A DNA stretch of 64,000 nt from Setoptus koraiensis (taxonomy: Eukaryota > Animalia > Arthropoda), in contig CM106585.1 in NCBI GenBank assembly GCA_048013815.1, positions 17,050,001-17,114,000 on the forward strand, given 5' to 3'. Below the pieces are notes generated by a model. That model was given only the letters and a program-made list of their open reading frames with translations, searched no databases and was not told where the DNA came from. A program made the position numbers and the translations under genes. Within the stretch, counting starts at the first letter, position 1, and each line of letters starts with the position of its first letter. Below are positions 28,387-53,043 of this stretch, in pieces.

Positions 28387-29638
28387 TATGAGGAGAGACT
28401 GAGAATTTCCCCTGCGAGGACAGAGTCTGTGTGTCTGTGTCCTCTGGCGGCCAGAGTGTGGCGGCCAGTCCGTACTCTGGCGGCCAGAGGACGGAGCGCG
28501 TCGCTCGTGAGAGGTGGGTATCATTGGCAGCCAGGGACGATTCGTTGCCCATGTCAGACGCTGTCTGGTTGGCCGTGGCTGTTATGTTGCAAACACAAAC
28601 AAAACGACAAAATGTGACATTTGGCGTCAATATCGGTGCCAGTTGCTCTCACTAGGTGAGCCGGCGCGAAGATGGACAGCGCCGATGGACAGCGACGATG
28701 GACAGCGACGATGGACAGTGACGATGACGGAGTGGCTACTCATCATGGCGCGTCTCTATGCAATATCTGTCATGCGAGCACTGGTCACTATTGAATAGTG
28801 TGCCTGGCGGAGTGTATTCCGTACATTGCCGGTATCTGCTGGTTGTGTATCATTGCTGCTGCCGGATCAGCGGATAAAGTAGTGCGCAGAGCTCGTGTGA
28901 TAATTGAGAAAATACTTTAATTATTATTCATCATCGAATACATTATGAGGTTGAGTGAGTCCGAGAGTGTCGTCGTTGTCATTCTCATTTTGCTGTTTGA
29001 GTCTGTTGTTGAGTGTGTGTGTGTTGGTGCAAATAATAACGAATAATAATATCAATAATAATAATAGTAATAATAATAGTAATAGCAATAATAATAGTAA
29101 TCATAATAGTAATAGTAATCACATCTACAATATATATATATATTCATATATATGTATCTCCTATGTACATGAACGCAATGACAATGACGACCACAACAAA
29201 CGCGACTAGACTTTTGCTCTCGTTCTCCTTTGTTACCAACAAATTGTTGGCGCCCGCGCCCCTCCTGCTCCCATTGGCCGCTGACTCTTATTAGTTATTT
29301 GTCCCGTGGTGCACCCATTGGGCACTGATACTTTGCATTATGCTCCAATCCAATAATGAAATGTGTCTGATATAATAAATGTCATGTGTGTCTTTTATTC
29401 AATCAATATTTGTGAGTTTGGGCGAGCGAGCGCCCGAAATCATTTCTTGTCAGTGTGTTTATCCGCACGATCCGCACCATTCGCACAATTCGCACAATTC
29501 GCACAATTCGCAACGGTCCAATGGTCTGGCGCCAGCACAGCTCCTGTCGGCCCGCGGGACGGCCGCTGGATTCAGCCGTTGGACTCCCCTGTCAGACTTG
29601 GCAAATACTACGTAATACTGCATAGGGATAATATGTGA

Positions 29639-32600
29639 TTACACCTGCACCTGGCCGGGGTCTCCGACGACCTGGTTTTGTCCTTGTCCGTTGAGAGGCG
29701 ATTGCGACGACGAATGCAGCACCATCGACTGGCTCGAGCTCACTTGTTGTTGTTGCTGCTGATGCTGCTGTTGCTGTTGTTGTTGTTGTTGGCCTAATTG
29801 ACTATTGACGAAACTTGACACGAGTCCATTACTGGCACCATTATTCGCTCCATTACTGCCACTAACATCCATGTCTCCGGGGTCGCGCGGCTTCTCCTGT
29901 CCCTGAGTGCGCTTCTTCTGTTTCATTCTCCTATTTTGGAACCTATAACGACAATGGCGACACCAATTAAACAGCGTTAATAAAACATGCACAATACAAG
30001 TTGATACATCACAGTTGATGCATCACAGTTGATAAGTCTCAGCTGATACATGATTACGGTTGATGTATATCAAATATACGCTGAGACGCGTCGACACAAA
30101 TGGCACACCGAGGCAATATTTGCGCAGCCTGTGCGTTTTGGGCCAGAGATCTCGGGGGCCAGAGTTGGCATTCGGCTCTGGCTGCCAACAGTGAGCCCGT
30201 CAATCAACACGTTGGATAATCGGCAAAGGGTTGCCTCAGTGATGCACCCAGCGAAAATACTCTGAGAATTCTTTGTGTGTAAACTGCAACAAAAACCGAA
30301 ATTGATGACCATGGACACGCAGCAACATGTTACACATGCATCGTATAGCAATAGTGTTACCACAATACGATGCTGGCATCATATAGCAGCATAGCTTGTG
30401 ATGCAACGTCATTGTTTCTTGATGAACTGGCGCAGTTAGCGTCCGTCTTGCGAGTATGGTCAGCATGGCGATTATGGCGAGTAGGGCGAGCACGGCTAGT
30501 AGGGCGAGTATGCCGACTATGCCGAATATGCCGGGCAAATGATGAAATGATGAAATGGCCGAAATGGCCGAATTGGCCGAAATGGGCACACACAATACGG
30601 ACTGCGGACACAGACGACACACGCAAGCACCAAAGTCACACAACAATTGCAATTGATCCCGCGATAATCTCACGGTATCACGGTAGCCGTTTTACACACA
30701 CTTAGCGCACACATGATACGTCACGTCGAGCCTCGCTCCGAACTCTGCAGCAACGAGCGCAGCAAAAGCAACAGCAGCAGCAACAACCTGTGCGCCCATG
30801 ACGCAACTGCCCGCTGACCGCTGCGACGAGCTCACCTGGTCAGCGCGCGTCGGCAGCCGATCGATTTCTGGGCATCGGCTTACCGAAGTCGCGCTCGGCC
30901 GCTCGATTTCTCGGCTGCCCGGCTGCCGGGGCACCGAGTTGCCAGGCTGATGTGAGAGAGATTCGCGGCCAGCTGATTGCGCCGCCGCTGCCAATTAGGC
31001 ACAAAAAAAATTTAATTCTTGCGCCGCCAAGAATTAAATCTGAGCCAGTCTTATCGCGCCATTGTGCGGCTCGCCATGGGCTCAACCTGGTCGCAGCGAG
31101 CGAACAAAGACACAAGACACGAACGCGCCGGCCAGACTCGTGGGCACCAGCATTTAGTGTTCGCTGATCGGGCCAGTGAGCCCGCCGAGAGCTCAGAGGA
31201 TTCAGAGGTTTCATTTAGCTGCATTAGCATGGCGGCGGCATGTGTCGCGGGGTATCTCTGGGGTATCGAAGGTGAGTGCCGCTGCCTTTTATAGGTTCGA
31301 TTTAGTGGTCGCGCTTCTATAAACGCGCCCAGTGGCTAACGTGACGAGTGGCGCTTGTGAGTGTGTGTGTTGTGTTGGCCGCTTCGATTGCAGTCGCGAA
31401 TCGCGACTCAACTGTGCGTTCGACGCCAATTCGACGAGTTGTTCGCGAACGTTGCCCAACGTTCTGTTTGGCTGTCATGTGTCTCGCTCGCAGCGAACGC
31501 ACTGTTCGCCGAACAGTGCGTTCGCCGAACAGTGTTCGCCGAATAGTGTTAGCAGCGAACAGTGTGTGTGTGTGTCTCTCACACACCATCGCTGTTAGCG
31601 TCAGCCAGTTCTCGACAGTGCGCTTCGAAGTTCGAGCGGCGCTCTCTTCGCCGAGCAACCGCTCGCTGCCGTGTGTGTGTGTGCTCTAATTCGAACCAGC
31701 AACAAAAATGATTCCATCGTTGGCTGTTCATTCTTTATTCGATATTTTTCTCCTTCTTCTCCTCGCCCGTCCGCTGCCTCTCGGCCTGTCTCTGTCTCTC
31801 TCTGTCTCTCGATCTCTCTGTGCCAGCGAACAACGACGCACTCGAGCCAGTTGCTGCCAGCGCCAGGCAGCCGCCAGAGCTCCTCTGAGACGCAACTGTC
31901 GTTGATTATCGTCGGCTCTAGCCGGCGCTCTGGCGCGGGCCACACACATCTGGGGCCCGCTGGCCGGCCCGATAATGCCAGAACGCGCGAGGCGAGGCTT
32001 CTTGAATTATGACACAATGCGTTTCGAGCTGGCAGTAAATTGGTGCGTCCGCCTTGCCCGAACTGGTGCGCCCGCCGGCCACCAGGCGGCCGACCTGATG
32101 TATCACTCACTGTTGTAACAGTGAGTCGCACTGCTGGAAGCGCAGCCAAGCGGGTGAATATGCGCCAACGGCGAGCTTTCAATGAATTGCTGCCCAGTGG
32201 GCCACTGTGGCCACTATAGGCCATGGCGGCCACTTCGGCCGCTAGGGTAACTGTTGAATAACAACAATAATCCACTAGTTTATTGCCAGTGTCCAGTGCC
32301 CAGTGTCCAGTGTCCAGTGTCCAGTGTCCAGCGTCCAGTGCCCAGTGTCCAGCGTGCACCGGACGGTGCGCAGTGAGTGCTCGCCGAGAGTGGCCGGCAC
32401 TCCCATCGTGCACTATAAAACAAATGCCCTGTGGCGCCCCCATCTGGCGGGCGCTCACAGGTCGCTGTGGGCTTTGTTTTTATCGTAGCGAGCGGTTGTT
32501 GGTCGGTGCCGTCATGCGACTATTATTACTTATTAGCCTATTAGGCCCATGAATTGTTGGCCGGCTTGCGCTGGCCAGTGGCTGCAAGCGGCCAACGAGA

Positions 32601-35600
32601 GCACACCTATCATTAGGACGATTATGCCTGATTGAAGCTGGCCGTCGTCGTCGTTGTTGTTGCTGTTGCCGTCGTTGTTGTTGCCGTCGTCGTTGTTGTT
32701 GTTGCTGTTGTTGTTGTTGCTGTCGTCGTGGCTGCGCTCGCAACTACGAAATTGCCAAAATACGAAACTACGAAGCTGCCAAACTGCGCCACTACGAATT
32801 TGCGATACTGCGAGCCCGCGAGCTGGCCACAGCCGGCCGACGTTATAGGCAAGTTGTTTGGGCGCAAACTTGTTCGGCGACTCTCTCATTAGCTGCTCGC
32901 AACATTATGCCGAGCGGCATAATGTGTACGCTGGCCGGCTCACCTGGCCGGCGTCGGGTTTCTTGCACCATGCGCTCGGTCGGGTATGTCGGCCGTTCGG
33001 GATACGCAGTGAGCGCTGTGGCCGGTCTCTGGGGCAGGTCCGGGCCGGTCTCTCACCGGCCGCACTGGCAACAACAACTGGCCTGCCGACTCACAACGAC
33101 TCACAACACTCGCAACAACAAACAACTGCTCGCACCAACTGGCCAGACAGGTTCCGGCATTCAGGCCACTGGCGAGCCGCCGTCAGCGCACTCCCATGCC
33201 ATGGGAGCAGCTCGCCAGCCATTCGCAGGCCAGTTTGCACACTGGCCAGCAAACTCTGCGAACTGGCCAGCAAACTCTGCGAACTGGCCAGTCTGTGAAC
33301 CGGCCAGTTCGCTTGCCAGTTCGCAGAGTGAGCTCGGGCGAACGCTCGCGAGGCTGCCAACGACGAGAGGCTGCCAACGACGACAAAGCGCTGGCTGGCT
33401 TCTCGTCGGGCGGCTCGAGCGAGGCTCCGAGCGCGAATCGTGCGCCGGCCAGCACAATCGGTTGCTCACACAGTAACAACTCTGGTCGCACTCTGGCGTT
33501 CGCAAACTCCCCTCCGACAGAGACTCTGACTCACAGTCTCTGACGGACGCTCTGACAGGCCGAGCGGAGAGAGAGTGAGCCGACACAAGCGACAGCCACA
33601 GACAGCCAACAACGACAAATATCCAAATGATGAATCATGCAAATCAAACTGGCGCATCTTTGTGCACACACACACTCTTACAAGTTCGAAGTTCGAACTC
33701 GCAAGTTCCAGCTTCGAACTCGCAAGTTCCAGCTTCGAACTCGCGAGTTCCAACTCGGAACACACAGGCAAACACAAATACCGTTAAGAGTAAATGAGCA
33801 GCCCGGCATAAGCCGTGAGCGAATGGGCCAGCGAACAGCCAGCGAACAAGCCAACTGTTCGCTGCCAACAGCCGAAATTAAGACTGTGTGTGTGTGACCG
33901 GCTAGCGTGCTGGCAGCGACGTCAAAAGTCAAACTAGTTGTTGTTGTGCCGCTATCGAACTCCGCTCGGCCAACTGGGCCAACTCGGCGGCCCGCCGAAC
34001 GTTCACCCGGCTCGGGCGGCCGCGCCCGCGGGCGGGCCGGCCGCCACCGCTCGTCACTGTTGGCACACAGTCGTCACACAGTCGCAGCTCGCGCCCGCAG
34101 CGTGCCAGTCGGACAAGCGCCCGAGCGACTGCTTGAGTGACTGCCCGAGCGCCCGCCCGAACGTCGCCCGAGCGGCGGCCCGACGACCGGCAGGCAGAGC
34201 GCCGAGGTACAGAAGCAATCAGCCTATATTGAGTGGTTGCGATGGGCAGCGCCACTAGCGCACTGGCGGCCGCATGTACGCACTTGAGTCGCTCGAGCGG
34301 CAACCAGCGCGCCTCTATATGCGCCCCGAGCGCGCTCGGATATTGCACGCGCTCGGATATTGCGCTCGGATGTTGCGCTCGGATGTTGCGCTCGGATGTT
34401 GCGCTCGGATATTGCGCGCGGATATTGCGCGCGACACGCAGCCAGCCGCGCACCAGCCGGTCGGATGTGCGCCTGCCAGCGACTTATTTAATTTATATCT
34501 GCAGCGCACAGCGGGCTGGGCGTGGCCGGCTGGCGGCCGGCGACACGCAGTACGCGGAGTACGCGCGGTACGCGGCCACGAGCCGGCCAGCGGCAAAGAG
34601 CCGCGAACCGGGCGACGTTCGCGTAATTCGCTTAATTCGTTGGCTCGTGAGGCGCGCCGCTGACACGGCCTGCGCCGCTTGCGAGTCGCCAGTGGGCCAG
34701 CTCGGCGTCACTTCGCGACGCGATTCCGGCGCACAGTTCGCGCGCGCCCCGCGACACCGACAGCAGCGCCGACAACTGCACCAACGACGCCAACAACAAC
34801 AACAGCGCTAGCGACAACAACGACAGCAACAGCGACAGCAACAACAACGACAGCAGCCCGAATCGCGGGCCATTATAGGCGAACGCACTTCCGCCAGCTG
34901 CTGCTTGTCGCGGGGCGGCGCGGCGCGGCGCGGGTTTGTTTGTCGGTGTGCGAGTGGGCAACTCGGGGTCGGCCACTCGCAAACGGGCGCGAATTTGCGA
35001 ACCACGAGCCAGCGAACTGGCAGTGTCCAAGTGAGCATACATATATACTGTACATTGTATAGACAATACGCGTATTTAGACAATGTTATTGGCGAGCATG
35101 TGCCCACTGCCCAAAGCGGACACTGCCCACGAGCGACTCGCCGGCCCGGCCGCTAGAGGCTGCTGTTGAGCCGGTTGCCAGAGGGCGACGTTGCGGGCGA
35201 CCGAGCCGCACCGAATTGGAATTAGATGCTAATGTCGCGCACATGTGCCGCGCCAATCTGGCGCAACTGGGGCCAATCCGCCAATCCCATGTCACCCCGA
35301 TCACCGATACAGCCCAATGGCTGTGCTCGCGTCAGGTGCTCGTGCCACTAGATCAGCTGAGGCCGGCCCGTGGCAAGCCTCACGAGCCTCACGAGCCTCA
35401 CGAGCTTCACGAGCCTCACGAGCTTCACGAGCCTCACGAGCCTCACAAGCATCACAAGCCTCACAAGCCTGACGAGCAGCGTCGGCACACAGCATCATGG
35501 ATGGCATCGTGTGCGATACTGGCTGGCGCAACGACGCCATGTTGGCACAATTACGTCAGCGTTGGCACAATGATGCCACATTGGCGCAATGACGCCAGCG

Positions 35601-38600
35601 TTGAGCAGGCATTGTCGTGTGCGGACATTGCGGGCAACTATTGCGTAACGCTCGCTAATGGTGCGGTTGCGCGCGGTTCGTCGACTGTGCGCCCGACTGT
35701 GCGCCGCAATGCGCGCTCGAAAGCGCCTGAACCGTCGGAATTCTCTGGACTGTGCGTTAGTTCGTGTGGCGCGCAACGTCGCCGCACAAACTAACGACCA
35801 CGATAAGATCTTGTTCGCTAGGCGCGTGTTGCCCGCACAACGCGCCACCACGTGCTGCCGACCGCAGCCGAGACAAATGGGCGCGCCGCGCATCGCAAGT
35901 TGCACAACAGCCGACCGTCGCGTCTGCCAACGTGCCAGACCGATGTGTCAATTGCCGCGTCGGGCCGCTCGGAGCCGCGTCGGGCCGGCCCGCACTATAG
36001 AGTCTATAGGCCAGAACACTGGGCGCTGCCGGCGCGGCGGTCAGCGAGCATCGGCCTGTCACTTGTCAGCTGTGCTGTTGGTATTGTGAGGACTGCTGGC
36101 GACGCATGCACGACAAGTGCGCTCGGCACATTTTGTGCGGTGTGGCGCGCACAGGCGACGGTGCACAGCCGCAGGACAGGTGAGCGGGGCTGGTGACGAG
36201 CGGCGGTGAGTGCGTTGCGTTGTACACAATGGCGCAGTTTGCATATTGTTGGCAGCATAATCGCATTGTCGGCACCGCGACATCGCCCGCGTGACTGTAC
36301 TTGTGCGTCGATTATGTTACGCAACTGGGCTCACATTGGAAGCTATGGGCAGAACGGTTGCGAGTGGCGCAATTCGCAAGCCGAATTTCGCAACAAAAAA
36401 GTATTATGTGCGCGCAAATATCCGCACACAATCGCATCACAATGGCACAAGGGCACAATAACAACACAATGTCAACAACAATGTCTGACGCACACAAGGT
36501 AACGACAGTGGCAAACTTGTCGGGCCGACTCGCCGCGATGCCAGCCATTGTTCGTCGGCGGCTGCCAACTCGTCGGGCCGGCCGCTGGCGGCTGCACCCG
36601 TCGGCGGTGCGCAACGACTAGTCGCCGCAACGAGTCGCTCGGTGCCGAGTCGGCGGCGATGTTGCAGCTCGTCGTGACGTTACGTAAGTTGTGCCGTTGT
36701 GATTATTTTGTCATTTGTTGTCTATCGGGCTGTCGTCGTTGCAGTTGCCAGACGCACAGTTGAGTGTTGCGCCAGTCGCAAGCGCCAGCGACAGCGCCCT
36801 GCCAGCGACAGCGACTCTGTCAGACGCACACGCAAGCGGGGCCCCGCGAACGGGCCGACAGCTCGACAGGCGGGCGGCCGACGGCGCACGGATCGACGCG
36901 GCGGATCGGAGCGGCGGCGGATAGACGCCGCGGGTCGACGCATAGAGGCGCATAGAGGCGCACGGAGGCGCACGGAGGCGCACGGGGGCGCAGACAGGCG
37001 CTCGCAAAGATAGCCAGATATTGGCGTCATCAAGTTCGCACAGTTGAGCACCAATTTATCTATTTATTTGTGTCGTCTTGCGTTGTGTAACAGCGCTCGC
37101 TGTTGCGTCACTGTTTGGCGCGCGTCACACGGTCGGGCAAGGGCGACACTAATAGCGCCTATAAAAGCTACCCAAGCTGCCACTAGACACACTAGACACA
37201 CTTGATATCAAATGGCGAAATGGCGACACGGTGAAGGGTTGATACAAGCACAACGAAGCGACACTTTTGCGTCGAGCTCGAGCTCGCCGAACCCTGTCGA
37301 GGGCGCCGGTCGGCACTGCGACAGCCCGCGCCCGATTCGCGCCGGCCAACTCATGCCAAATACCATTATGTCGCTAACTAACCAAGCGGCCAAGTCGCGC
37401 ACTAACGGCATTGTTATTCATCCATTTATTCGCCGCCTATCTGGCCCGTTCTGGCGTGCGTGCCATCGCGTTCGTGCGTCGCTCGGTGTGTGGCGCTGCC
37501 CATTGGCTCTATCTACAAATGCCCCGTCCATATAAGAATGCCCTGTCTGTATATGAGTGCTTCGTTCACATAAAAATGCCCTGCCTCTATACAAATACAA
37601 TGTACCCTCTGTATATACAGTGCCCCATTAACACAAAAATGCCCCGTCTGTATACAAATGCCCCGCGCGCAAATATACACGCGAACAGTGCGCGTATACT
37701 ATACAGTATTGGTAGTACAGTATTAGTGCGTTTATAGTGGGGCGTTGTGCCGGCACAGGACGCGCATATTTGCACAGGGGCTGCGCGTGCGGATATACGC
37801 GGAATAAAAGCTTTCGCAACACCACTCACAACAGTCAGTTGCCAGATATCTGGCGAGCGAGTCGTCTGGCAAGCTGGCACAGCTGACAGTTGTGTGACGT
37901 TGTCTGGTGTCTCTTGACAGCGGCCGTTCAGTTGTTGTCGTCGTTGTTGTTGCTGTTGTTGTCGTTGTTGTTGTTGTTGCTGTTGTCGTTGTGTGTCGCG
38001 ATTGTTGCTGTTGTGTGTTGCTGTTGCGTCGGTGGTTGATGTGGCTGGCGCGGCAACGACAACACGCAAGTCACGCCACACAATTAGCGAGTGAGATACC
38101 AAAGACGAAGGGACGAAAAACAGCAACAACGAGCGGCAACAACGAACAACAACAACGAACAACAACAACGAACGGCAACAACGAACAACGAAAAACAGTC
38201 GCAACGTGCGGCCTATATTGTGTGCGCTGGCTCGGCACCAAAGAATGAAAAAAACAAACTAAAAATAAAAACAGTTGCTGTTGTTCGAAATTAATTTATA
38301 CATTCGTAGCCGCCACAATCAGCTGATCGCAGCCGCTTGTCGGACTAACAAGTTGTTGTTTACGGGCAACTGACTGGTCAGTTGCGCCGACCGTCCCGAC
38401 ACAGCCAAAATCAGCTGCCGGTCGGTGAGTAAATTGTATTTTGGGTTATTTGGCACCTCTGGTCAGCTGAGTGGCCGCTCGGTCGGGCAGCGAACAACAA
38501 GCGGCCATTGGGCCGCGGATGTCGGCGGGCATCGGCGGGCATCGGCGGGCATCGGCGGATATTCGCAAACAGACACAAAGTGCGAGACGGGGGCGCATAG

Positions 38601-41600
38601 GCGAACAGGTTCGGAGGCGAGCGTGGCGCCGGCCATTGATCAGACACAATAGAGTTAACAACTGATGACTTTGCCATTCACTCGAGTCGCCCAATTGGCG
38701 AGCAGGTTAATTTAATTTGATCCCGTCTGTTATACTGTAACTATACTATGCTAAGATATGATGTGTGCAGCATAATATCTTGCGTAGTAATATTGTTATG
38801 TAACACAACAGATCGCCGTCGGATAATGGAGCATCGCACGACAAGTGAGCGAGTGAGCAAGTGAGTGCTTTTCGTAATTGTGTTTGTTGCGTTTGTTTGT
38901 TTGCATGCTCACGTTGCTGCCTATAACCTATAATAGAATATTATACAATATTATTACATTATCGTTATTATCATTACCATTTTGGCTGTGTGCCGCTGTC
39001 GTTGTTGTTGCTGCTGTCGTTGTTGTTGCTGCTGTCGTTGTTGTTGCTGCTGCCGCTGTTGTTGCTATTGCTGCTGTTGTTGTTGTTGCCGCTGTTGTTG
39101 TTGCCGCTGTTGTTGTTGGTTGGCTCGCCGCCATTATGCAACAGCCACAATGCAGCCATAATGCAGCCATAATGCAGCCGTAATGCAGCCGTAATGCAGC
39201 CCTAGTGCAGCCGTCATGAGACGAGCCGGAGCGGCAACAAACGAACGCAACGAACAAAACATGATACTTCGCAGAGCTAATATTATATCTTACATGATTA
39301 GATAATATAATTTACTCTCCGTGCGCCGCTCTCAGCCGCGTCTATAAATATTGCATCTATAAATATTGCCGCATCGCAGCCATTCTCTGTGGCCAAGTTG
39401 AACTCTGATTAACAGCAACAGCCAAAGCGACGAGGCACGCCAAGACGAACCGACTCGGCTGCCAATATTCTCGCTCCGCCGACAGAACAAATATCCGCGC
39501 TAGAATAAACATGCCAGCGCGAACAAACATGCCAACATCCGAGCCAGCGAACACCCGAGCGAACGAACATCCGAACGAGAGCCGCTTTCCAGTCGGCGTG
39601 TTGCAATCCACTGACAGCGGCACATCTCATCCGGGCCGGGCCGGCCCGGCGGCAGCCCGCTCGTAACCATTGCTAGCGCTGGCTAGCAGCGCCGGCCCGG
39701 CTCGCGAAGCAAGCCAGTGGCAAACGATAATATAAACAATATAAAGGTACGCATCGCCACTGCGAGGCGTCTAAACTCTAGACCGTCTAAACGCACCTGA
39801 GCTTACCATGGCGGTTACCTGTGCGATGCGCATTCACGATTTCAACCGTCGAGAGATTGTTTCGGCACGTTGTTCGTGATTGCTCGCCGGCCGCCGCGGC
39901 AACAACTATCCAGTTTGTTGTAGTTGTAGTTGCTGTCGGTGTCGGTGTTGTTGTTGTTCGGGCATAAATACCCGATGACGTCAACACACACACACACACT
40001 CACAATTTGTGAGTCACAAAGAGTCGACTTGGCGAGACACAAAAACAATTCGTTGCGCTTCCTCATTTCGTTTATCGTCGCTGCTGCACCCTTCTCCTGT
40101 CTAGCTGGCTCGGCGCTCGCTAGCTCGGCGCTGGCTGGCGAGCTAGCAGAGCGACAGCCGCATAACTGTGGGCACTGTGCCTTGAGTGTCCCATGCAACT
40201 TGTGTCGGCCGATGAGACGTTCGAGCGCAAGGCGTTCGAGCAGGTAAACACGGCAAACAAACGCAAGAAAACAACAACAACAGCAGCAGCAACAACAACG
40301 ACAGCAACAACAACAACAACAAGTTTGCAACTCGGCGGCGAGGGGCTAGCCCGAAATAGCTAACAAAGTGGCTGTGCGTTGTGTAATGGCACTGATTTTA
40401 TAAATAGACTTGATAGACAGCGACTAACCAACTTATTGTCAGGTTGCGAGCTCGATAGCAGGAGAGGTTATGCAACAGCGGCAGTGGCTGCTTTCGGTTG
40501 GTCGCTTGCTCGCCTTGGCTGGCGGCTCGGCGGCTCGGCAGATCGGCGAATCGGCAGCTCGGTGGCTCGGCGACTCGGCAGCTCGGTGGCTCGGTGGCTC
40601 GGCTGCTCGGCAGGGCCGTTATCGAGCATTAATGCATGCTCAAAATGCACACACACAAATAAATATCTTCTTCTCCTGCTTCTCTGGCTTCTCTGGCTTC
40701 TCTGGCTGCGCTGGCTTCTCTGGCTGCGCTGGCTTCTCTGGCTGTTGCCATTGCTGCTATTGATTACATTACAATTCTTGCAAAATGATGCCAACAACAA
40801 TAACAAACAACGACAGCGGCGGCAACTGCACCAACTACACCACCAACAACAACGACTACGACAACAACAACAGCAACAACAGCAACAGCAACAGCGGCAA
40901 CAACGACAACAACAACAATAACAACGCCAGCGACGACGACTCAAATTAATACAATACTCAATCTGCATATAAAATGTCCTATAGAGACTGGTCGTCGTGG
41001 CAGTCGTCGCCGTGGTCGTCGTGGTCGTGGTCGTTTGCAGGGTGATCAATCTTATTTCTTTTCTTTTAATTTCGCCGCATCTTTTAATTCTGACGCTGCT
41101 GCTGCTGGCTCTGGCTGCATGCGGCCCGATGCTGCTCTCAGTGGCTTCTCGCTGCAACTTGCGCCAGTGCAACTCCGAACTCTGCTCAGTCCGGTTTCGG
41201 TCGCGTTCGAACTGGCGGTCGCGTTCGAACTGGCAGTCGCTCTGCTCGGCTCTGCTCGGCTCGGCTTGCGACCGCTCGGCTCGGCGCTCCGCTCGGTCCG
41301 GCCGCCCCGAATGCGAGTCCGACTGCCAGTCCGAACGCGACTGCCAACGCGACTACCGATGCGACTGCGAGTCCGAATTCGAATACGAATGCCACTACGA
41401 ATGCCACTACGACGAGCGTCGACAATCCGATGCGAGCGCTCGGCCGGCCGCTGTCAGTGGGCCACCGGCCCGAAATGGCAGCCCGCAATTGCGAGCACTG
41501 GCCAACATTGTGCGGCCGCAATCAGCTGACGGGCGCACTCCGGCGGAGTCCGGCGCAGGAATCTGGCCGGCGCTGACTGTGGCGAGAGAATGTGTGCACT

Positions 41601-44600
41601 TGGCCGAGTGCAAGCTGCATTCATTGCGCCGAACTGCCACTGCGAACTCTCGTCGCGCGGAGCTCGTCGAGTGCTCGTTGGCCGAACTCGAATCCGAGTT
41701 GCGGCGCTCGTCGCCCGAACCGGCGAGAACCGGCGCAACTTTGCGGACGCGAGTGCCAATTGGACTGCGGCGGCCGGCGCTCGCAGGGCCGATTGTTGTG
41801 GCGAAAAGAAGACACACAAACAGTCGCCAGTTTGTTGCTAGTTAGAAACTACAAACGCGCTCACAACAATTGATACAATTGCGGCCAGCGCCGCTCCGGC
41901 CGGCCTGTGCAACCGGCCCAGCGGTATAAATAGAAACGGGCCAGCGTCGAAATAGCGCCGAAGCAGCGCCGAAGCAGCGCCGAAGCAGCGCCGAAGCAGC
42001 GCCGAAGCAGCGCCGAAGCAACGCCGAAATATTCGCCAGTGTGTGCGACCATAACTAATCCAAACCTGATATAACCACTCTTGCGCTCTCGCATTTGCGC
42101 TCTATCGGCCGCTGCTTCGATTGGCCGAATTCGCACTTTATCCACTTTATACACTCGGCCACTTTGCTGCGCTGCGCCTCGCCTCGCATGCCTCACGCTC
42201 TATAGTGGTCACTAGTGGTCACTGCTGGCGGCTGCACTATACTGGCCGCCGCCGCTGCTGCCAAACAACAATTTCCTGCCCACAAACTGACCAGACAGCC
42301 CACCTGAATCAATGGACGCTGCCGTTGCGGGCTTGTTGGAGCGGCTCGAACAGGCTCGCAACGGCTCGGAATGGCTCGCAACGGCTCGGAATGGCTCGCA
42401 CTGGCTCGCACTGGCTCGAAACGCCGTTCGAAACGGCCCGAAACGGCCCGAAACGGCCCGAAATGGCCCGAAATGGCTCGAAGTGGCTCGAAATGGCGCA
42501 CAGCGACGCGCAGCCGGCCAGACAACAATTTTCGCGCACCCGACAGATAATTCCAGTTCGCCATTCTGGGCGAGATTCGAAATTCGCCTTTGGAAATTCG
42601 CCGTTCGCAGTCCGAAATTCTCGTTCGCCGTCCGGAATTCGCAGTTTGAAATTCGCAGTGCGAAATTCGCCGTCCGAAATTCGCCGTCCGAAATTCGCAG
42701 TCCGAAATTCGCAGTTCGAAATTCGCAGTTCTCTCGAACTCGGCGACGACACGCCCCCGCACACAACAGCAACATTGCAGTGCATGCACTTGTGGGCACG
42801 ACTGCGGCCGACGCATCCGAGTCGCGGCAACGCAGTTTTGGCCCACTCGGCGAATCTCGCCCATTCGTTAGCCGTGCCCGTCTCGTGTGCCCTATATAGG
42901 CCAATAATTAATATGCATTCTCTGCAACTTTGGCGCAACACGACGACGACGACGACACACACACACACACACACACCGTTCCATTGTGTGCGCCCGAAAT
43001 GTTTGCCTGACCGGAGCACCGTTTTTCGGACACTGCTATTCGCGTTTCGGGCACGCTTTTCGGGCACGCTTTTTCGGGCGCCCTCTCTCGCTCAGTGGCC
43101 GTTTTTTCGCTGGCTGACCGCTTTTTCGGGCGCAAACGGTGCGCCGAAAAACAACTGTGTGCCTGTGTGTGCCTCGCAGACTGTTCACGGAACTCGCCAG
43201 CGGCTTATATAGGCTTCATAAATTTTCCGAGCTTTCGGAGTTTTCTAAGTTTTCGGAGCCTTCGGAGCTTTCGGACAGTGAGCGTGCGCGGCGCCAATTG
43301 TGCACAGCGGTGTCAGCGGCGAAAAATTGTGTGAAAACGCTGTTTTGCATGTTCGGCCGTCGACAGTGCGCCCCCGAACGGACAAAGAAACAAGGAGGAA
43401 ACACGGCCAACGACACGACACTGGACGAGCGACCATTAGACGCAATTATGCAACGGCGACTATGCACTTATGTAACTACACTTGTAACAGGCTTGTAACC
43501 GTCGCCACTGGCGCTAGTTACAAGTCCGCGTCGGCGGGCGACAACCGCGGCCGGCGCGGACGGGCGACTGGCCGACCATTATAACAGACGGGCGCTGAAA
43601 AATGAGAGAAGCGATGAAAGGCGCCACTCGAGAGGCGATGAAAAACGAGACGAGCGACCAGCGAGCAAAATAAATAAAAGGGCGACACTCGACACTGGCG
43701 GCGCGCGCAATCCGTGCAGCCGATTGAATCAAGTGTGCCGATTGAATGTGTATCAAGTGTGTTGTTTGTTTGGCCAACAATGGATAATCCGAGCTGCGAG
43801 AGCGATAAACGAGAGTTGTGTGAATGAATGGCCTAATCGATGCTGACAGCCGATGCTGGCAGCACTTGGCTTGCGTAATCTTGCGCAAACAGACGGCCGA
43901 GAAATAGATAAGCAGCATTATGTAAAAAACACATATTTGCCAGCCGCCGTGTATCGCCGGTATAATGGCCGGAGTTATCACGACCGCGATCGGCGCACTT
44001 GACCCCGCGCGATTGTCAGTGAGACGCACGCAAGCCCGAGACAAGTGCATCAATGTTGCGCCAATGTTGCGTCACTGTTGCGTCAATCTGGCAACAACAA
44101 CGACGACAACGACGACAGCGACACGGAGAACAGCGACGACAACAGCGGCGACAAGACGACAACGACGACACGGCCACATTACGTGACCGGCGGCCTATAT
44201 AACCGCGGCCGGCACTATAAGCCGCCCGCGTGAGTAGAGTGGCGTCATTTTTCAGTTTGCGTCTTGTCTGTCAGTCACTTGTCCGTCACTCATGCCTCGC
44301 GTCTGTCAATGGCTGTCATTATGACAGTGTCATACGGTCAGCTGACAAACCGTCGGACAGTGTGAGCCTCAGACCGATGCGACGCCGTGACATTTGATGA
44401 CAACTCGCCGAAGCGTCGCCAGTGCGTTGTCTAACAACAACAGTTGTCTAACAACGACTGTTGTCTAACAACGACTGTTGTCTAACAACGACTGTTGTCT
44501 AAACTGCCAATTGTGAGCCAATTAGCAGCTGATTGGTCAGCTGAGCCGTCGATAGTGCACAATTTGCAAGCGCACTCTGAGCGCAAAGTCACATCATGCA

Positions 44601-47600
44601 ACAGGTGAGCTGATGCATTTCGACTGACAGTCAGCTGACCGGTCGCGCTGACACTGTTGTGCGACTGTCTATTGCACAGCTGACAGACGACAACGGGCGG
44701 CGTTGGACGGGACACACGACGACGGGCGGCGTTGGACGGGACAGACGATACCCGAGTGAGGGTATCGGTGTGCAAATGATACAGTGCGGCGCTGCCAGAA
44801 ATGCCACTTCTCATATCCGTCTCGGCACACACGCAGCGTGCGCGAGAACAACAACAACAGATGGGGAACAACAATGGCACAAAGACAAGAATTGCGTGAC
44901 TCGGCAAGTGCCAGCTCTCTCCACTTGTCGCCGTCTCGGCGCACACACTCGAGCTCCCAATTCGAGAGCGACTCCGAGGGCGAATTCGAGAGCGACTCCG
45001 ACAGGCGAATTCGCGAGCGAGCCCGAGAGCGAATGCGAATCCGTCGGCGAGTGGCAGCGCGAACGCGAATTTGTCGGCGAGCCGAGAATGAAAGAATGAA
45101 AGAATTGCATTATTCGGCGCTGAGATTTCGGCCGAGAATGCGCAACAGTGCGACGGCCACAATTGTGTGTCTGTGGCTGCTCTCCTTTTGCCCATTCGCT
45201 GGCCGTTCGCTGGCCGTTCGCTGGCCAGTCTGGCCAGATTCAGCGCCAGTGTAACACAAGTGATACAAGTGATACAAGTGTTACGAGTGTTGCAAGCGTT
45301 ACAAGTGTCAGTTTTCGAGTTCGGGTTGCCTTGTGGGCAGCGCACGCATCGCTGAGAAAATGCAACTCGCTGATTACGGCATGCATAAATAACTCGCTGA
45401 TATTGAGCTTCTTTGGCTGCTCTTTAACTCACAGGTGACTTTGTCAGCGCTCTTCAGCTGGCTGGTTCGGCACTGGCTCTGGCCGGCAATTTTGTGTTCA
45501 CCTTGCCGTCGTTGGCTTGTTACGTCTTTATTTTGTTCATTTGTGGCTGCAACAATTTTATTTGGCGAGACAAAGCAGGAAACTTGACCCAAAATGTGTC
45601 ATGCCTGTGTCACACAAGCCGGCCCTGTGTCAGTCGTCTGTCAGTGTATCAGCCAGCCAGTCAGCTGGCTGTCAGTGTATCGGCCCTGTGTCAGCTGGCT
45701 GTCAGTGCGAGCGGCCCTGTGTCAGCTGAGTGTCAGTGCGAGCGGCCAAGGCTGCCACAAATGCCAATTGTGTCCAAATGACAATCGCACGGCGAGCATG
45801 CGATACCCGGTCGCACGGCAGGCGCATCGACGGCCGCCCGACAAGCCCGACGAGCCCGACGAGCCGCTCGACAAGCCGCCGGTCGCAAGCGGATAAATAG
45901 AGCGCGCCGTCGTACTCTGTCACAGCCTCTATCGCACACACTGCACATATTACAGAGTGTGTCAGCGCATTGCGTAACGAGCGCAGAGCCATGAGAATGC
46001 AAAATGCGCAAAATGGGGCTCTCGCCAGTGGTCAATTAGTGGCCGTGGCTGGCATGCAACGGCCAGCAAACGGACGGCAAACGGACGGCAAACGGACGGC
46101 GAACGGACGGCGAGCGGCACAGAAATGACGAAAGCGATGGCATGCAAACAGTGTGGCGAGTCCATAAAACTGTAAACTTTATCCATCTATTATCCGTGCA
46201 TTATATTGCCGGTGGCTAATTTGCTGCTCATAATGGCGAGCAAATTATAATCAATTTGGGCGCTGCTGTCGACGCGGCCGTGGTGCTGAGCGCAAGGCAA
46301 ACAAGCAGTGCCAAGTCGGAGTCCCATGGCACGACAAACTGTCACGGCATGAGACGCTCGTAGAATGAGACAGCCAGAGCAACGACAAAAATTTTGCTTG
46401 ATTAATGATCTTTTGCGAGCTTTGATTTATTTGCACCACGTGGCCACTACTCCAGTGTGTGGGGCCAGTCAATGTGTGTAGTGTCAACTGGTCAACAGCG
46501 TCGGGCCGGCCGCGGCGCACAGATCATTAATCTAGCCCGCGGTGCGCGGTCCGCGGAGTTAGCGGAGGTGTCGCCATTTACCTCATGTTGCTCGCGCTGG
46601 CCAATTGTTTGCGATTGGCGCTCGTTTGTTTGCAGCGACGACGCGACAACAACAACGGCGACAACAGCGACATGAACGACAACAACGATATAAACGACAA
46701 CAGCGACATGAACGACAACAACGACAGCGACAACAACGACAAGCGGCCTCAATTAGGAATGCATTAGTGTTTGCGGTCGCCGGCGGGCCAGTCAAGTGGA
46801 TAACGGGATTATTCAAATTTGCAACTTGAAATGGCGCCCATTATAGTGCCATTATAGGTGAGCGTGGGTGGCCTACCTGGGCGCACTGCACTGCGTTGCG
46901 GCCGGCGGCCAGCAGCGCGGCCCGGTGGTAAGCGGTGCGGCGGCCAGCAGCGCCCCACTAGCAGTGCCATACCAGCAGTGTCAGTGTCGTGGCCGAGTGG
47001 GCCGGCGGCCGGTCCGCCCGAGGCCATTTGCGCGCCGCACAACCGACGGGCAGCACCCATCGGTGCTTCGGTGACATTTGCTGCTGCGATTTCGGCCCGC
47101 TTCGTCTCGTCCGTTATCATATTTGCGCTCTTTGTTCTCTATTTGCTGCTTGCGTCTCCGCGTCGCCCTCTCCGGGCCGCCACAGTCTGACGTGCGTGCC
47201 TGCCCGGCCGCTTCGTGTTCGCTGGCCCCAGTTGGCCGCGGCCGGCGTCGGTTGTCGCAACTCTCCCACCCTCCCCACTCTCCCCGCTGTCGCTGGCGCT
47301 CGCCAATCTCGCTGGGTCGCGCTGTCTGCCCCCAGAAACGTCGCGCTCGCCCCCGAAATGCCGCGCTCGCCTCGAGAAATGCCGCGCTGGCCGAAATTTG
47401 TCGGTTGTCGCGGCGGTTGCGACACGGCCACATTACGACGCGGCCACATTACGACGCGGCCACATTACGACATTGCACGGTTGCGACATTTGCCGGGCAC
47501 CGCAGCACGAACGACTGGCCAGCGCCACCGAAAACATGTAAGCGGATATATAGATATAAATGCGGTTTTGTGTGACGCGGCGCTGCCACGAGCACTGGCG

Positions 47601-50600
47601 CTGGTTGCGCTTGACCAGCACATGACAACGACATTTCATTTCGGGCCGGCGCGGTTGCGTCTGCTTGCCACATGGACGCACATTGGCGGCCCGTTATGAT
47701 TAATGACCCCGCCATTGCATATGTTTTGGCCAGCCGAGCGGCCTTACATGTTACACTGGCCACACTGGCTGTCGGACGGGCCGCACTCGTCGGGCGGGCC
47801 GCGCTCGTCGGACCGGCCGCGCTAGTCGGGCGACTGGGCGCTTGTGACGCGCTGTTTAGACCGCGCGACACAAGCGCCAGCAGAGCGCCACCCGAGTGCA
47901 AAGACCGCTGCCAAACACACAGCTGGCCCGCTTGACGGTGCCCGCTCACTGGTGCCCACTCGACAGTGCCCGCTCGCTGGTGCCCACTCGACGGTGCCAG
48001 CGCGGAATCGCGGTGAGTCGCGGGCAATTGCGGCGATTCGCGGCAATTATCAATATTCATATTGCACCCGCACTGACAGCGTTGCAGCGATTGTGGCGCT
48101 CGTCGCGATGCTGAGCGGGCCTCCGCTCCGATTTCTGTCGGCGCATTGTGTTTTCTTGAGTTGGCTGCGCCGGGCACAGGCGGCCCGTCGGGCGGCGCGA
48201 TCGGCCCGCGACAGACGCACACTCGAAGCTATCGAGTTACCTTTTATAGGATAACTGGCATTCGGGCCGACTTGCCTGTGGAAGGCGCTTGCAGCGCCTT
48301 CCACTGGCCGCTTTCGCCCGGTTAGTGGCCCGAGGCGCACAAACAACTTGCCAGTGCCACTGCCATTATTATCATTATCGCCTACAAATCTATGCACTGG
48401 CCAGAGATCACCTGAACAGAGTCGCTGGCGGCCACTCCTCCGCTGCGCGCCGCTCCGACGGCCGGACAGGGCCGACAGAACGCCGAACGGCCAGAGAACG
48501 CCGAAGCCCGACAGAACGCCCAACCCCGATGTGACTCCGAACGCCGAACGCCGAACGCCGAGAGACTGTTCGAGCTCGACGCAAGTGGAAACACTGGCCA
48601 GTTCTCACAGGTCCGCGCTGCTCGCTGCCACAAGTCACTCGTCGGTGCCCGCTCGGTACTGTCGGCGCCCGCGCGGTGCCCGCTCGCTGTTTGCCTTGTC
48701 GCGTCTCCCATATTTCTCACGTCTCATGTTATCGCGCGATCAGCTGACCATTTAGCGCGAGCCTCGGGCCGCTCTCACCGCCGCCGACGGTGGCGCTGGT
48801 TGGACGCACCCAGACATCGCCACCGGTCGGCGATTCTCGAGTCGCCATTTTGATCGATCTGATTGATACTTCACATTTTGTCAGCAATCTTGTATTTCGT
48901 CGACAATCTTGTCTCGTCGACAATCTTGTATTTTGTCAGCAATCTTGTCTCGTCGACAATCTCACGTTTTGTCGACGAGTTCTGCGAATGTTTTGCGAAT
49001 TTTCGCCCGAATTTCGGTCACATCACTTACCATATTTTCACTTGGGTCTCGTTCAAATCCAGCAGTTGCGCTATCTCTATTCTTCTGGCGCGCGTTAAAT
49101 ATTTGTTTGTGTAGAATTCTTTCTCTAATTCGGTCAATTGTTTGTTTGTGAAATTGGTCCTGCCCACATTGCCGCTGCCGCCGCCGCCGGTCTGGCCGTT
49201 GGACGATTGACTATTGTGGCGTCCGTTGCGTTGTGTTGCGCCACCCTGGCCGGCCTGGCCGCCGCCCACGCCCATGCCCACCGACAGGGCGCCCATGCCC
49301 GGCGGACCGGCCGACAGGAGACCCGCACTAGAGCGCTCGGCCGAGTTTGGCAACGAGCCCGTGGATGACGAGGCCGACAATTGCGACGGCGAACAATTGT
49401 TCAGACTGGCCTGATGATGGCCACCCAGCAAATTGACTCCGTTGTTTGTTGTTGCGCCGTGCATGACGCCGATGGAACCGAACAGCGGTTTCACGTCGCC
49501 GCTCGTGGTCATTCCGTACGCGGTGCCGTTCATTGACTGGATCTGGCCGTACGGCACCATGGAGCCCGCCGTCCCGTTCGGGTGGCCGGCCGGCGACGTG
49601 GAGGAGTAGCTGTCGTCGCTGTTGATGTTGGTCTGTTGCTGTTGCAGCTTTTGGGCGCCTGCCGCGCGACACCGTTAGTAGTGTGTCGAAAAGTGGACGA
49701 TAGGGGGCCGAGAAATTGGAGAGAGGAAAACGTTAGAAATGCAGTTACGTAAGTTGAGTAATCGCGCCAACGATATGATATAAAAACAAAATATAAACAA
49801 ATGAAACTTACCCGCCGACGAGGGCGCCGAGCGCTTCACCTTCATCCACTTGTACACGACGGGCTGCTGCTGGGGCTCCCTGTTCTGCAGTTGCATCTGA
49901 TGGTGGTTGGCGTTGGCGGTGGCGGTGGTTTGGCTGTTGTTAGTGTTGGTGTTGTTGGTGGTGGTGCTGTTGTTGTTGTTGTTGTCGGCCGACTGCTGCT
50001 GTTGCTGCTGGTGCAAATGCTGCTGACTGGCGGCCTGCTGATCGAGACTTGCACCGTCCGGCACCGAGGTTGCACTGGTTTGTTGCCTGGTCAATTGGTT
50101 ATTTGTCAATGAAGGGGGTGATAAAGAGTGCGCGTTGGCACTCGTCGGCGGTGTTGTCAGGGTGGTAAAAGTCGGCGGAGAGCTCATTTGGTGATGCTGC
50201 ACCAAATGCTGCTGCTGGTGCAAGTGGTGGTGCAAGGGCTGATAGTGGGGCTGGTGCAGATGGTGCTGGTGCTGCGCCTGGTGGTGGTGATGGTGGTGCG
50301 GGGGCGCTTGATGTTGGTGGTGCTGATGTTGTTGGTGCTGTTGTTGCTGGATGTGGTGCGGATGTGCGGCGCCCAATTGGTGCTGGTGCTGCTGGTGATG
50401 CTGGTGGTGATGTTGTTGCTGTTGTTGTTGTTGCTGCTGCTGGATATACTGGTGCTGTTGGTTGTGCGGATTGTGTGTAGTCAATTGGTGCTGCTGGTGC
50501 TGGTGCTGTTGGTGGTGCTGGTGGTGCGCCTGGTGCTGGTGGTGCTGTTGTTGTTGATCGGCCTCTAGTGACACCGACGACGACGAGGGCGAATGTTGCG

Positions 50601-51813
50601 TAAGAGGATGCTGCTGCGGCTGCTGGTGACCTTGTAGAGTTGGCGGCGTCGATATAGGTAGGATCCTCAAATTGGTGCCGGCGGCATGCAGTGCGTCCGC
50701 TGCTGAGGCGCCGAAATTGCTGTTGGCGCTGCTGTTATTAGACTTGTTGCCATTTGTGACAGGCTGCAAAGTTTGGGGCGACTGGTGATTTGGTGGCGTT
50801 CCGTTTGCTGGCGACGCGGCTATTGCGCCCAGTGACGTGGGCACCACCGGCACCACTGGCACGCCGGCAGCAGCAGCTATCGGCAACAATATAGGACTAT
50901 CGGCACAGGTAGCCGGTTGTGCAATACCGTTCATGATGGGATGCTGATGATGATGCTGAAAGTGTTGCTCATAATGTTGCGCGTGTTGCTGATGGTGATG
51001 TTGTTGCTGTTGTTGCAGGTGGTGGTGGTGGTGGTGAAGTTGTTGTTGTGGTTGATGTTGCTGATTATGCAAATGCTGTTGTTGTTGTTGTTGTTGTTGT
51101 GGATGCTGAAAAGCGGCCGCATTCTGATGATGGTGATGTTGCGCGTGGTGCTGGTGGTGAAGGTGGTGAGCGTGCGGCATCAAAATCATGGGATGATGTT
51201 GCTGTTGTTCAATATTGGTTAGATCGGCTGTATTAAGCAAATGATGATGATGTTTGTTGTCCGCTAGCGGTGATTGATTGCTGGCCAGCACTTGTTGTTG
51301 TTGCCGCTGCTGAGTGAATTGCTCCTGATGTAAATCAAGCTGTTGGTGTTGGAGGTGATGAAGCTGCTGGTGCTGCTGTTGTTGTTGTTGATGGTGGTGC
51401 AATTGATGGGGTGCTTGGTGATGCTGTTGTTGTTGTTGTAATTGTTGTTGCTGTTGTTGTTGTTGCTGATGCTGAAAGTGTTGCTGATAAGTGTGATGAT
51501 GCTGTTGATGATTCTGAATTGTCACCGGCGTGATGTTTGCTGTGAGTGTTGGCGTCGATTGGGGACTCACTGCGCTCGCCAGCATGGTGGCATCGCCCGC
51601 GCCTAAACTGACCGGCGACTGATGGTGATAATTGTGAGGTAGGCTCCCATTTGTGATTGGACTAGCCGAGTGATTGAAATGATGATGATGATTATTGTTG
51701 TAGTTGACCCTAGATTGAGTCACTGCGCTTGCTGCTGCCGCCGTCATTGCCGATTGTTCATTATGCGACACAACAGGATTTGATAGATAATCGGTGGCGT
51801 TCTCTGTCTTCAT
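29639..51813 (-). CDS. lab: Hox1/labial homeodomain protein, 977 aa; exons 51813-49812, 49658-49031, 29942-29639
   Basis: Hexapeptide VYKWMKVKR in exon 1. Homeodomain [45 protein letters not shown]|[11 protein letters not shown] has labial-diagnostic RTNFT and MKQKKR. Phases match (G|GC; TG|G) and the CDS of 2002+628+304=2934 nt is a multiple of 3. Confidence 0.95.
32286..32355. repeat. 7-bp minisatellite (CCAGTGT)n, ~10 units
   Basis: Seen directly in the sequence. Confidence 0.93.
33682..33758. repeat. 21-bp minisatellite (TTCGAACTCGCAAGTTCCAGC)n, ~3 units
   Basis: Seen directly in the sequence. Confidence 0.88.
34331..34430. repeat. 13-bp minisatellite (GCGCTCGGAT[A/G]TT)n, ~7 units
   Basis: Seen directly in the sequence. 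Confidence 0.9.
35376..35470. repeat. 9-bp minisatellite (AGCCTCACG)n, ~10 units
   Basis: Seen directly in the sequence. Confidence 0.93.
41952..42027. repeat. 11-bp minisatellite (AGCGCCGAAGC)n, ~6 units
   Basis: Seen directly in the sequence. Confidence 0.93.
42352..42730. repeat. Compound minisatellite: 10-bp AAACGGCCCG/AATGGCTCG units followed by GAAATTCGC-core units
   Basis: Two degenerate arrays at 42352-42492 and 42577-42730. Confidence 0.88.
44427..44503. repeat. 17-bp minisatellite (TTGTCTAACAACGACTG)n, ~4 units
   Basis: Seen directly in the sequence. Confidence 0.92.
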
Positions 51814-52105
51814 CGTAATTAATTAATGAGAGAAAATGTGCTATTATCTTTCTGTTGTATTTCTATTGTATGTTGTATTATTCATTACTAAAAACTATAT
51901 AAACACACACACACACACACATACAACTTCCATTTCGACTGAAATGAAACTGACTTGTGAGTCAGTTCGGCAACACACACACACACACACACACATTCGA
52001 CTCAATCCAGTGCATTTCTTTTATTAGCGCATGCGCACGCGCCTTATTGCTGTTGCCGTAGTCGCTGTAGTTGTCGCTGTAGTTGCCGCTGTTGTAGTTG
52101 TTGCT

Positions 52106-52175
<70 letters not shown>
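52106..52175. repeat. Compound (TAG)n(TTG)n trinucleotide repeat upstream of the labial ATG
   Basis: Seen directly in the sequence. Confidence 0.95.
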
Positions 52176-52176
<1 letters not shown>

Positions 52177-53043
52177 GGCTGTTGTTGCTGGATTGTATTG
52201 ATTCGAATTTCTACATCACCCATTGGTTATTCGCATCAGACTCTAAATGTGCAAGAATGTGTTCTCATATAGAAACAAACAATGATGGTGGCCAACCTCT
52301 AATGTCAGTCCCATACAGCTGATGAGATTGCATAAGAGTAAGAATACAGAGTAGCTGACAAGTTGATTTGAATACAAAATTATCCAATTATTCGAATAAT
52401 AAGCATCAGTAATCTCGCAGGGGCATCACAGTATCTGCTCATCCAGTGTGGCCAATTGTCGAGTTTGGTGGCATATAGACGAACACCTACAATCGTTTGA
52501 CTATTCGCGATTGGTTAACCCAGGGCCAGTGGGCACGCCAGAGTCCACTTGCTTATTATGTGATGACTTGGTCAAGTTCACGAGGCAAACTTGCAAGTAA
52601 CTGTAAAAAAATCAATGAGAAGTCAGGAGTGTAGAAAATACGCTGAAAGTTTATTCCATCCAGATAGACTAAAGAATTTTTCGGCTCAAGCCGCCAGAAC
52701 AAAATGGACAGCGGTCTCGGTGAGGTTTATTGATTCGAGAGAAATCCAAAGAGTCTGATAACAGGCCATGGTGACGAGCAACAACAATAACAAAAGAAAA
52801 ACATTCATCAAATTTCCTGACTCCGACTCATTGGATCCATCAAGTTGACCAGAATCCGTATTGCTTTAATAACTTGTTTAACTTGCTTTAAACTTGTATG
52901 CTGGTGCCGACGACCTATCGTAGTCCGTCACCAAGAGCTTGTGAGGGACCCCTCAGATGTGCCTAGAAAAAGCCCGTTGCGAAGAAAGTAACATTTGTAA
53001 AATGCACCTATAGTTCGTAGAATGCAATACAACATCCTTTATT

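Follow-up and report, generated by a model that had tools for sequence, protein, structure and literature searches.

Here, we describe a gene on the minus strand of a 64,000-nt stretch of Setoptus koraiensis DNA (contig CM106585.1, positions 17,050,001 to 17,114,000), which is called the window below and supplies all unlabelled coordinates. By its sequence the gene is labial (Hox1), with an Antp-class homeodomain and three coding exons, and its homeobox is interrupted by a predicted intron of 19,088 nt. The original prediction, made from the DNA letters, had split the labial homeodomain inside Trp48 as TG/G (a slash marks a splice or codon boundary) with its halves 19,088 nt apart. Reading both exon ends confirms this, and the split first noted matches to the base. 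The gene has the following parts.

49812-51813, minus strand: exon 1 coding sequence (CDS), 2,002 nt, with the ATG at 51813, ending in phase 1 at G/GTAAGT; its open reading frame (ORF) is 49675-51813
49843-49854, minus strand: hexapeptide core YKWM, the Exd/Pbx-contact motif of Hox proteins, read in translation
49659-49811, minus strand: intron 1, 153 nt, GTAAGT...TACTAAC...CAG, with TACTAAC as the branch-site motif; the frame closes across it
49031-49658, minus strand: exon 2, 628 nt, holding the linker, homeodomain codons 1-47 and the TG of Trp48
49031-49173, minus strand: homeobox part 1, codons 1-47 plus the TG of codon 48, matching Pfam Homeodomain
29943-49030, minus strand: intron 2, 19,088 nt, U2-type GTAAGT...TTATAG, phase 2 in Trp48
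29906-29942, minus strand: homeobox part 2, the third base of codon 48 plus codons 49-60
29639-29942, minus strand: exon 3, holding the G of Trp48 and a Gln-rich C-terminal tail, with the stop at 29641-29639

Exon 2 ends as ...AAC GAG ACC CAA GTG AAA ATA TG/gtaagt, its final base being 49031, and exon 3 starts at 29942 as ...cgttatag/G TTC CAA AAT AGG AGA ATG AAA CAG AAG AAG CGC. The TTATAG acceptor follows candidate branch motifs TTAAC at -35 and TTAAT at -25. The joined CDS (51813-49812, 49658-49031, 29942-29639) has 2,934 nt and encodes 977 amino acids with one terminal stop. The spliced homeodomain is intact with 60 residues, W48 and N51 being in place. Translated in six frames, the window has a single FQNRR segment, at 29941, and no second homeobox half inside intron 2.

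The identity of the gene, also named in the original prediction, stands on the Pfam Homeodomain match of the exon 2 piece (profile positions 4-47 of 57, E 6e-15) and on the homologues from insects, spiders, mites and molluscs. Those named among the matches listed are labial or Hox-A1, with one Hox-B6-like. The blastn matches of the relatives start at 49173-49177, the edge of homeobox part 1. The YKWM-type hexapeptide is present within exon 1, about 175 residues ahead of the homeodomain. A KEGLIP motif after the homeodomain is absent here, whereas the spider, Leptotrombidium and Drosophila proteins read KKR.KEGLIP.

The ATG at 51813 opens an ORF of 712 amino acids that holds the hexapeptide and reaches the GTAAGT donor after 49812. 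The exon 1 product is a Gln/His-rich N-terminal region, and the whole labial protein is 21% Q and 13% H. Exon 1 is also backed by RNA-like contigs with 0-1 mismatches at 50022-50373.

Splicing was examined in three runs, X2, X3 and X9, which come from one study and one coded organism and are treated as RNA from their behaviour. They match the labial exons without mismatches. Record 10 of X3 joins 49812 to 49658, so intron 1 (153 nt, CT..AC on the plus strand) is removed exactly. Contigs of X2 together span exon 2 between 49651 and 49029 with zero mismatches. The RNA-like depth is 0 in all three runs over 46797-48963, the intron 2 DNA beside exon 2; this read view covered only 2.4 kb of the length of intron 2.

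Record 1 of X2 has 225 nt, of which 142 letters track exon 2 to 49029 and the remaining 83 diverge from the genome. It departs from the genome at the exon 2 donor with a 2-nt overshoot. The join with exon 3 predicts this overshoot, as GT opens the intron (GTA...) and exon 3 (GTT...) alike. The RNA-like contigs support the intron 2 donor and weakly support its acceptor. Splicing would join 49031 to 29942, with ...CAAGTGAAAATATG as the predicted letters ahead of 29942, and restore a continuous recognition helix.

On the acceptor side, 15% of the words of 29300-31300 occur in X9, about the size of exon 3, a lower 8% in X10 and 92-99% in the DNA runs. A 76-amino-acid query found no short spliced fragments of the species itself in the protein collections, and the exon 3 piece had 0 matches among 1.84 billion protein representatives. 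Among the JGI contigs, neither the junction itself (26 nt, exact) nor a degenerate pattern for a contiguous eriophyoid-type homeobox had a match.

The source genome is, as its sequence indicates, that of an eriophyoid mite. The window's RPL4 ORF is 88% identical to that of the eriophyoid Fragariocoptes setiger and 93% identical to another contig, and other mites rank next. We surveyed the intron position in 221 labial-like sequences collected by protein searches of public contigs. Gene callers blind to splicing continue past donors, so the point where a labial ORF ends tells the intron position. The ORF ends fall into these classes.

Eriophyoid-type: 13 sequences, all those that bear the signature ending in HT or YT; ...NETQVKIW then stop; TG/GTAA, codon 48, phase 2
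Sarcoptiform-type: about 9 sequences; QVK/V..., eight of them QVK/VS; 46/47, phase 0
Drosophila-type and some others: 11 sequences; Q/V..., Q/VS in six; 44/45, phase 0
P0255, an unlabelled ORF: 1 sequence; QVKIW/VSQ then stop; possibly 48/49, phase 0

The first three positions could be read in DNA, all within the stretch for residues 45-48: 44/45, 46/47 and codon 48 in phase 2. Four related contigs (L001, L002, L003 and L007) read AT(A or T) TG/GTAAGT, and a fifth, L009, aligns through ATATG/GTAAGT. The Dermatophagoides pteronyssinus contig L005 reads AAA/GTAAGT...ACAG/ATT TGG, which is 46/47 in phase 0, with an intron of 861 nt and 29% guanine plus cytosine (GC). The drosophilid contig L008 reads CAG/gtaagc...tgcag/GTC AAG ATC TGG, which is 44/45 in phase 0, and its homeobox intron spans 1859-1923 (65 nt). 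The mite Leptotrombidium deliense (L004) and the spider Caerostris darwini (L006) have the whole homeodomain in one exon. P0255 comes from a JGI contig of 1,299 nt and offers, by a protein-level reading only, a candidate fourth position in the same 12 nt.

By these readings the eriophyoids have the TG/G position in Trp48 in common; it marks their lineage rather than this one genome, and it is absent from every other lineage examined. It does not share position and phase with the sarcoptiform intron (46/47, phase 0, versus codon 48, phase 2). Identity with the Drosophila intron was rejected likewise, as 44/45 is in phase 0 in L008. We found no statement of the Drosophila labial intron position in the open-access literature and read it from the drosophilid contig; this homeodomain was not found in the Aculops supplementary text.

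The original prediction had given Drosophila lab a large intron at 44/45 and placed the present one 11 nt downstream. The drosophilid contig agrees with the position but not with the large size. The distance of 11 nt is right against the drosophilids, but the nearest different position lies only 5 nt away, in the sarcoptiform mites. It had also been asked whether Trp48 is the general chelicerate position, and the comparison across chelicerates and insects says otherwise, Leptotrombidium and the spider being uninterrupted and Dermatophagoides split at 46/47. The supposed novelty of the position survives with regard to the other lineages examined but not as a private trait of this genome, since 13 eriophyoid-type relatives carry it.

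A long intron at this site appears shared as well. Exon 3 is absent downstream of the donor for 876 nt in L001, 2,847 nt in L002, 1,383 nt in L003 and 4,285 nt in L007; these contigs are otherwise gene-dense. The intron is therefore long across the group.

Intron 2 is single-copy, and the window is without N. Its GC content is 56.9% against 42-46% in the flanks and its observed/expected CpG ratio is 1.27 against 0.91-0.95, making it a 19-kb CpG-rich domain. Short tandem arrays, whose periods range from 3 to 42, make up 22% of it but 2.3% of the left flank. The blastn comparison of the intron with itself and with the rest of the window shows local tandem arrays only and no dispersed repeats, so bloating by transposons or dispersed repeats was rejected. 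A hidden gene was rejected too, as no Pfam family occurs in the ten longest intron ORFs, no Rfam family reaches threshold in the intron and no second homeobox half lies there.

The closest relative is L001, with exon 2 83% identical and the coding exons 74-83% identical at the DNA level. Three islands of the intron are conserved with it.

48757-48793, minus strand: conserved island 1, 86% identical to L001 over 37 nt
48323-48441, minus strand: conserved island 2, 73% identical to L001 over 144 aligned columns, E 7e-20
48214-48265, minus strand: conserved island 3, 83% identical to L001, with a perfect 24-nt block and a TATAAAAGG core

The islands are colinear with the 876 nt of intron in L001, and the DNA between them does not align. 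The contig L009 holds only 197 nt of intron and adds no third-species conservation. The 24-nt block of island 3, TCCTATAAAAGGTAACTCGATAGC, resembles a TATA box on the sense strand, and the RNA-like depth there is 0. Island 3 could mark an internal promoter, to judge from this resemblance.

Several motifs of the Hox/Exd, Pbx/Meis, GAGA and Zeste types are more frequent in the intron than in its dinucleotide shuffles, also after tandem-repeat collapse and local shuffling. Their over-representation was nonetheless set aside, because for the two motifs compared it is absent as density against the flanks and because it comes partly from double-counted palindromes and one tandem repeat on the acceptor side. 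That repeat is found within the 93-nt AG-free zone that precedes the intron 2 acceptor, 57-109 nt ahead of exon 3.

29999-30051, minus strand: 14-nt tandem repeat AGTTGATACATCAC, 3.8 copies, with several TGATNNAT-type sites

Hox/Exd autoregulatory sites were rejected as well. In the window, TGATGGAT (3 observed, 2.2 expected) and TGATNNATKR occur about as often as chance predicts, and intron 2 has zero occurrences of TGATGGAT. A single TGATGGAT site of the labial/Exd type lies at 52835-52842 on the minus strand, 1.0 kb upstream of the ATG.

Upstream of labial, the window holds two further genes or gene pieces on the same strand.

51814-53043, minus strand: 5' intergenic region, 1,230 nt, from the stop of the M41-peptidase ORF (53046-53044) to the labial ATG
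53044-53713, minus strand: M41 peptidase (FtsH/AFG3-like), the C-terminal part only, split by an intron of about 90 nt
54917-55987, minus strand: TGIF-type TALE homeodomain ORF, 356 amino acids, Pfam Homeobox_KN 3.4e-17, reading ...NWFINARRR

The labial ATG is 3.1 kb from the TGIF-type ORF upstream of it. Between that ORF and the M41 part there is about 1.2 kb, too short for an AAA domain, and the M41 piece may be a truncated gene or a remnant. Elsewhere, two relatives (L002:5385-8072 and L003:2567-5059) have a MutS-family gene some 2-4 kb ahead of exon 2 of labial. These more distant relatives have the hexapeptide and the homeobox in one ORF without intron 1, whereas in the window the neighbours differ and intron 1 is present.

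There are no other Hox genes in the 64-kb window, the neighbours being the M41 peptidase remnant, the TGIF-type TALE gene and RPL4. The gene is thus not found beside proboscipedia at the 3' end of a Hox cluster, but cluster position does not define orthology. The missing Hox neighbours fit the published genome of the eriophyoid Aculops lycopersici, in which proboscipedia is lost and labial stands alone on its scaffold (PMC7738191).

To our knowledge, eriophyoids are the most intron-poor arthropod lineage, and their genomes are among the most intron-poor of animals. In A. lycopersici, 83.7% of the genes lack introns, and the introns that remain have a median of 170 bp; the same paper reports intron gains as minimal, singles out an intron of 12.5 kb as large, discusses the retention of 5' introns as possibly regulatory and considers the keeping of introns for their cis-regulatory content (PMC7738191). 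The intron-poor and compact window fits this picture. Its Nup98-96 gene is a single ORF of 1,627 amino acids, in line with the intronless Nup98 of the original prediction, and the gap upstream of labial, first put at about 1.2 kb to a gene remnant, measures 1,230 nt.

We consider it probable that this is an eriophyoid labial gene with a U2-type intron of 19,088 nt at TG/G in its recognition helix, at a position shared by the clade; that the intron is long for a regulatory reason is an inference from this. In a lineage that shed most introns and kept the rest near 170 nt, intron 2 would have been retained long. It would hold much of the cis-regulatory DNA of labial (enhancers and silencers), and local tandem duplication would keep remodelling the DNA between a few conserved islands. 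Such a regulatory role is plausible from the sequence because the length is kept in relatives, conserved islands stand amid turnover, no other content was found and the 5' intergenic DNA is short.

Several points weigh against this reading. No contig or read joining 49031 to 29942 was seen, and the RNA nature of X2, X3 and X9 is taken from their behaviour. The eriophyoid origin of the 13 relatives comes from their signature and compact contigs, not from labelled records. Conservation within the intron covers one relative and 876 nt; blastn finds nothing outside the exon in the more distant relatives. The motif excess (Hox/Exd, Pbx/Meis and Polycomb-type) exists only against the intron's own GC-rich background, the per-kb densities of TGATNNAT and TGACAG, the two checked, equal those of the flanks, and the 22% of tandem repeat fits neutral slippage equally well.

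The main rival to the regulatory reading is neutral inflation: a genuine intron that owes its size to replication slippage and tandem duplication, in a region where deletions are unfavoured or would harm splicing, and that holds little or no regulatory information. The share of tandem arrays (22% versus 2.3% of the left flank), the flank-like motif densities and the lack of anything alignable with L002, L003 and L007 would suit it. Yet the intron is long also in four relatives with compact contigs, in a genome family otherwise strongly streamlined (PMC7738191), the Hox gene has merely 1.2 kb of 5' intergenic DNA, and the three islands match L001 at 73-86%, like the coding exons. We find this explanation rather unlikely. 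Still less likely is that the intron is long by housing a further transcription unit, for instance a non-coding RNA or the internal promoter of a short labial isoform: the perfect TATAAAAGG block of island 3 is on the sense strand and common to L001, but the RNA-like depth is 0 at the island within the 2.4 kb viewed, and neither Rfam families nor, in the longest ORFs, Pfam families occur. As to an artefact, by misassembly of two loci or by splicing of exon 2 to a nearer unrecognised exon, it is true that the junction was not directly seen. Such an artefact is nevertheless very improbable, given that the window is without N, that the join to the window's sole FQNRR segment is exact in frame, phase and sequence and that the X2 contig runs past the donor by precisely the two letters which exon 3 has as well. 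Four independent relative assemblies also go without exon 3 for up to 4.3 kb, and the DNA runs hold 92-99% of the acceptor-side words.

The origin of the position is a separate matter. The eriophyoid intron might be the sarcoptiform 46/47 intron slid 5 nt downstream, hence an old acariform intron; both groups are acariform, their introns lie within 5 nt in the same helix, and intron gains are reported as minimal in Aculops (PMC7738191). However, the protein reads QVKIWFQ unchanged in both groups, so a 5-nt shift needs matched moves of donor and acceptor; the acariform Leptotrombidium has no homeobox intron; and at least three arthropod positions (44/45, 46/47 and 48 in phase 2, possibly also 48/49) suggest repeated events. 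We regard the sliding as doubtful. Because the protein is invariant across the site and Leptotrombidium is without a homeobox intron, we lean to a separate gain. Somewhat more credible than the sliding, though still tentative, is a fuller version of such a gain, in which the 12 nt coding for residues 45-48 would be a recurrent intron site of arthropods and TG/G a lineage-specific gain later kept as a multi-kb regulatory container.

Introns in the labial homeobox and long Hox introns in compact genomes are already known. Neither the Aculops genome paper (PMC7738191) nor the arthropod Hox survey (PMC4862073) mentions where exactly this intron sits, that it is restricted to eriophyoids or that it is so extremely long, and we found no other report of these points. 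The finding leaves the knowledge of Hox gene function unchanged.

The placement of eriophyoids among mites is disputed. TG/GTAAGT inside the labial Trp48 is an exact and easily scored character that appears to unite eriophyoids against sarcoptiform and trombidiform mites. If it is a lineage-specific gain, it would be a clean rare-genomic-change marker for the membership and placement of Eriophyoidea. The introns at 44/45, 46/47 and Trp48 form a near-neighbour set in an invariant protein segment, where denser sampling can separate sliding from repeated gain. A 19-kb Hox intron beside 1.2 kb of upstream DNA is also a natural test of what a streamlined animal genome cannot delete.

Compared with the drosophilid labial, the gene and the helix are the same, and so is the layout of three exons, the first with the hexapeptide and the other two sharing the homeobox (PMC7706710, Fig. 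1B; contig L008). The drosophilid intron differs in lying 11 nt upstream in phase 0 (CAG/GT) with 65 nt in L008, versus phase 2 and 19,088 nt here. Dermatophagoides pteronyssinus, a sarcoptiform, shares with the present case an acariform mite origin, the gene and an intron in the recognition helix. Its intron differs in lying 5 nt upstream in phase 0 (AAA/GTAAGT...CAG/ATT) with 861 nt and a GC content of 29%, versus 57% here.

Long Hox introns occur in other compact arthropod genomes, as the Hox genes of Tetranychus have 5.3 kb of intron on average (PMC4862073) while the median intron of its genome is 94 bp (Table 1 of PMC7738191). The present case differs in that a single 19-kb intron lies inside the homeobox and is known from sequence alone. 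The 12.5-kb intron of A. lycopersici is in a calcium-channel gene and is an AT-AC intron of the U12 minor spliceosome, orthologous to a Tetranychus intron. In contrast, the labial intron is GT-AG and U2-type, has a lineage-specific position and is longer than that calcium-channel intron, the one that the eriophyoid genome paper remarks on as large.

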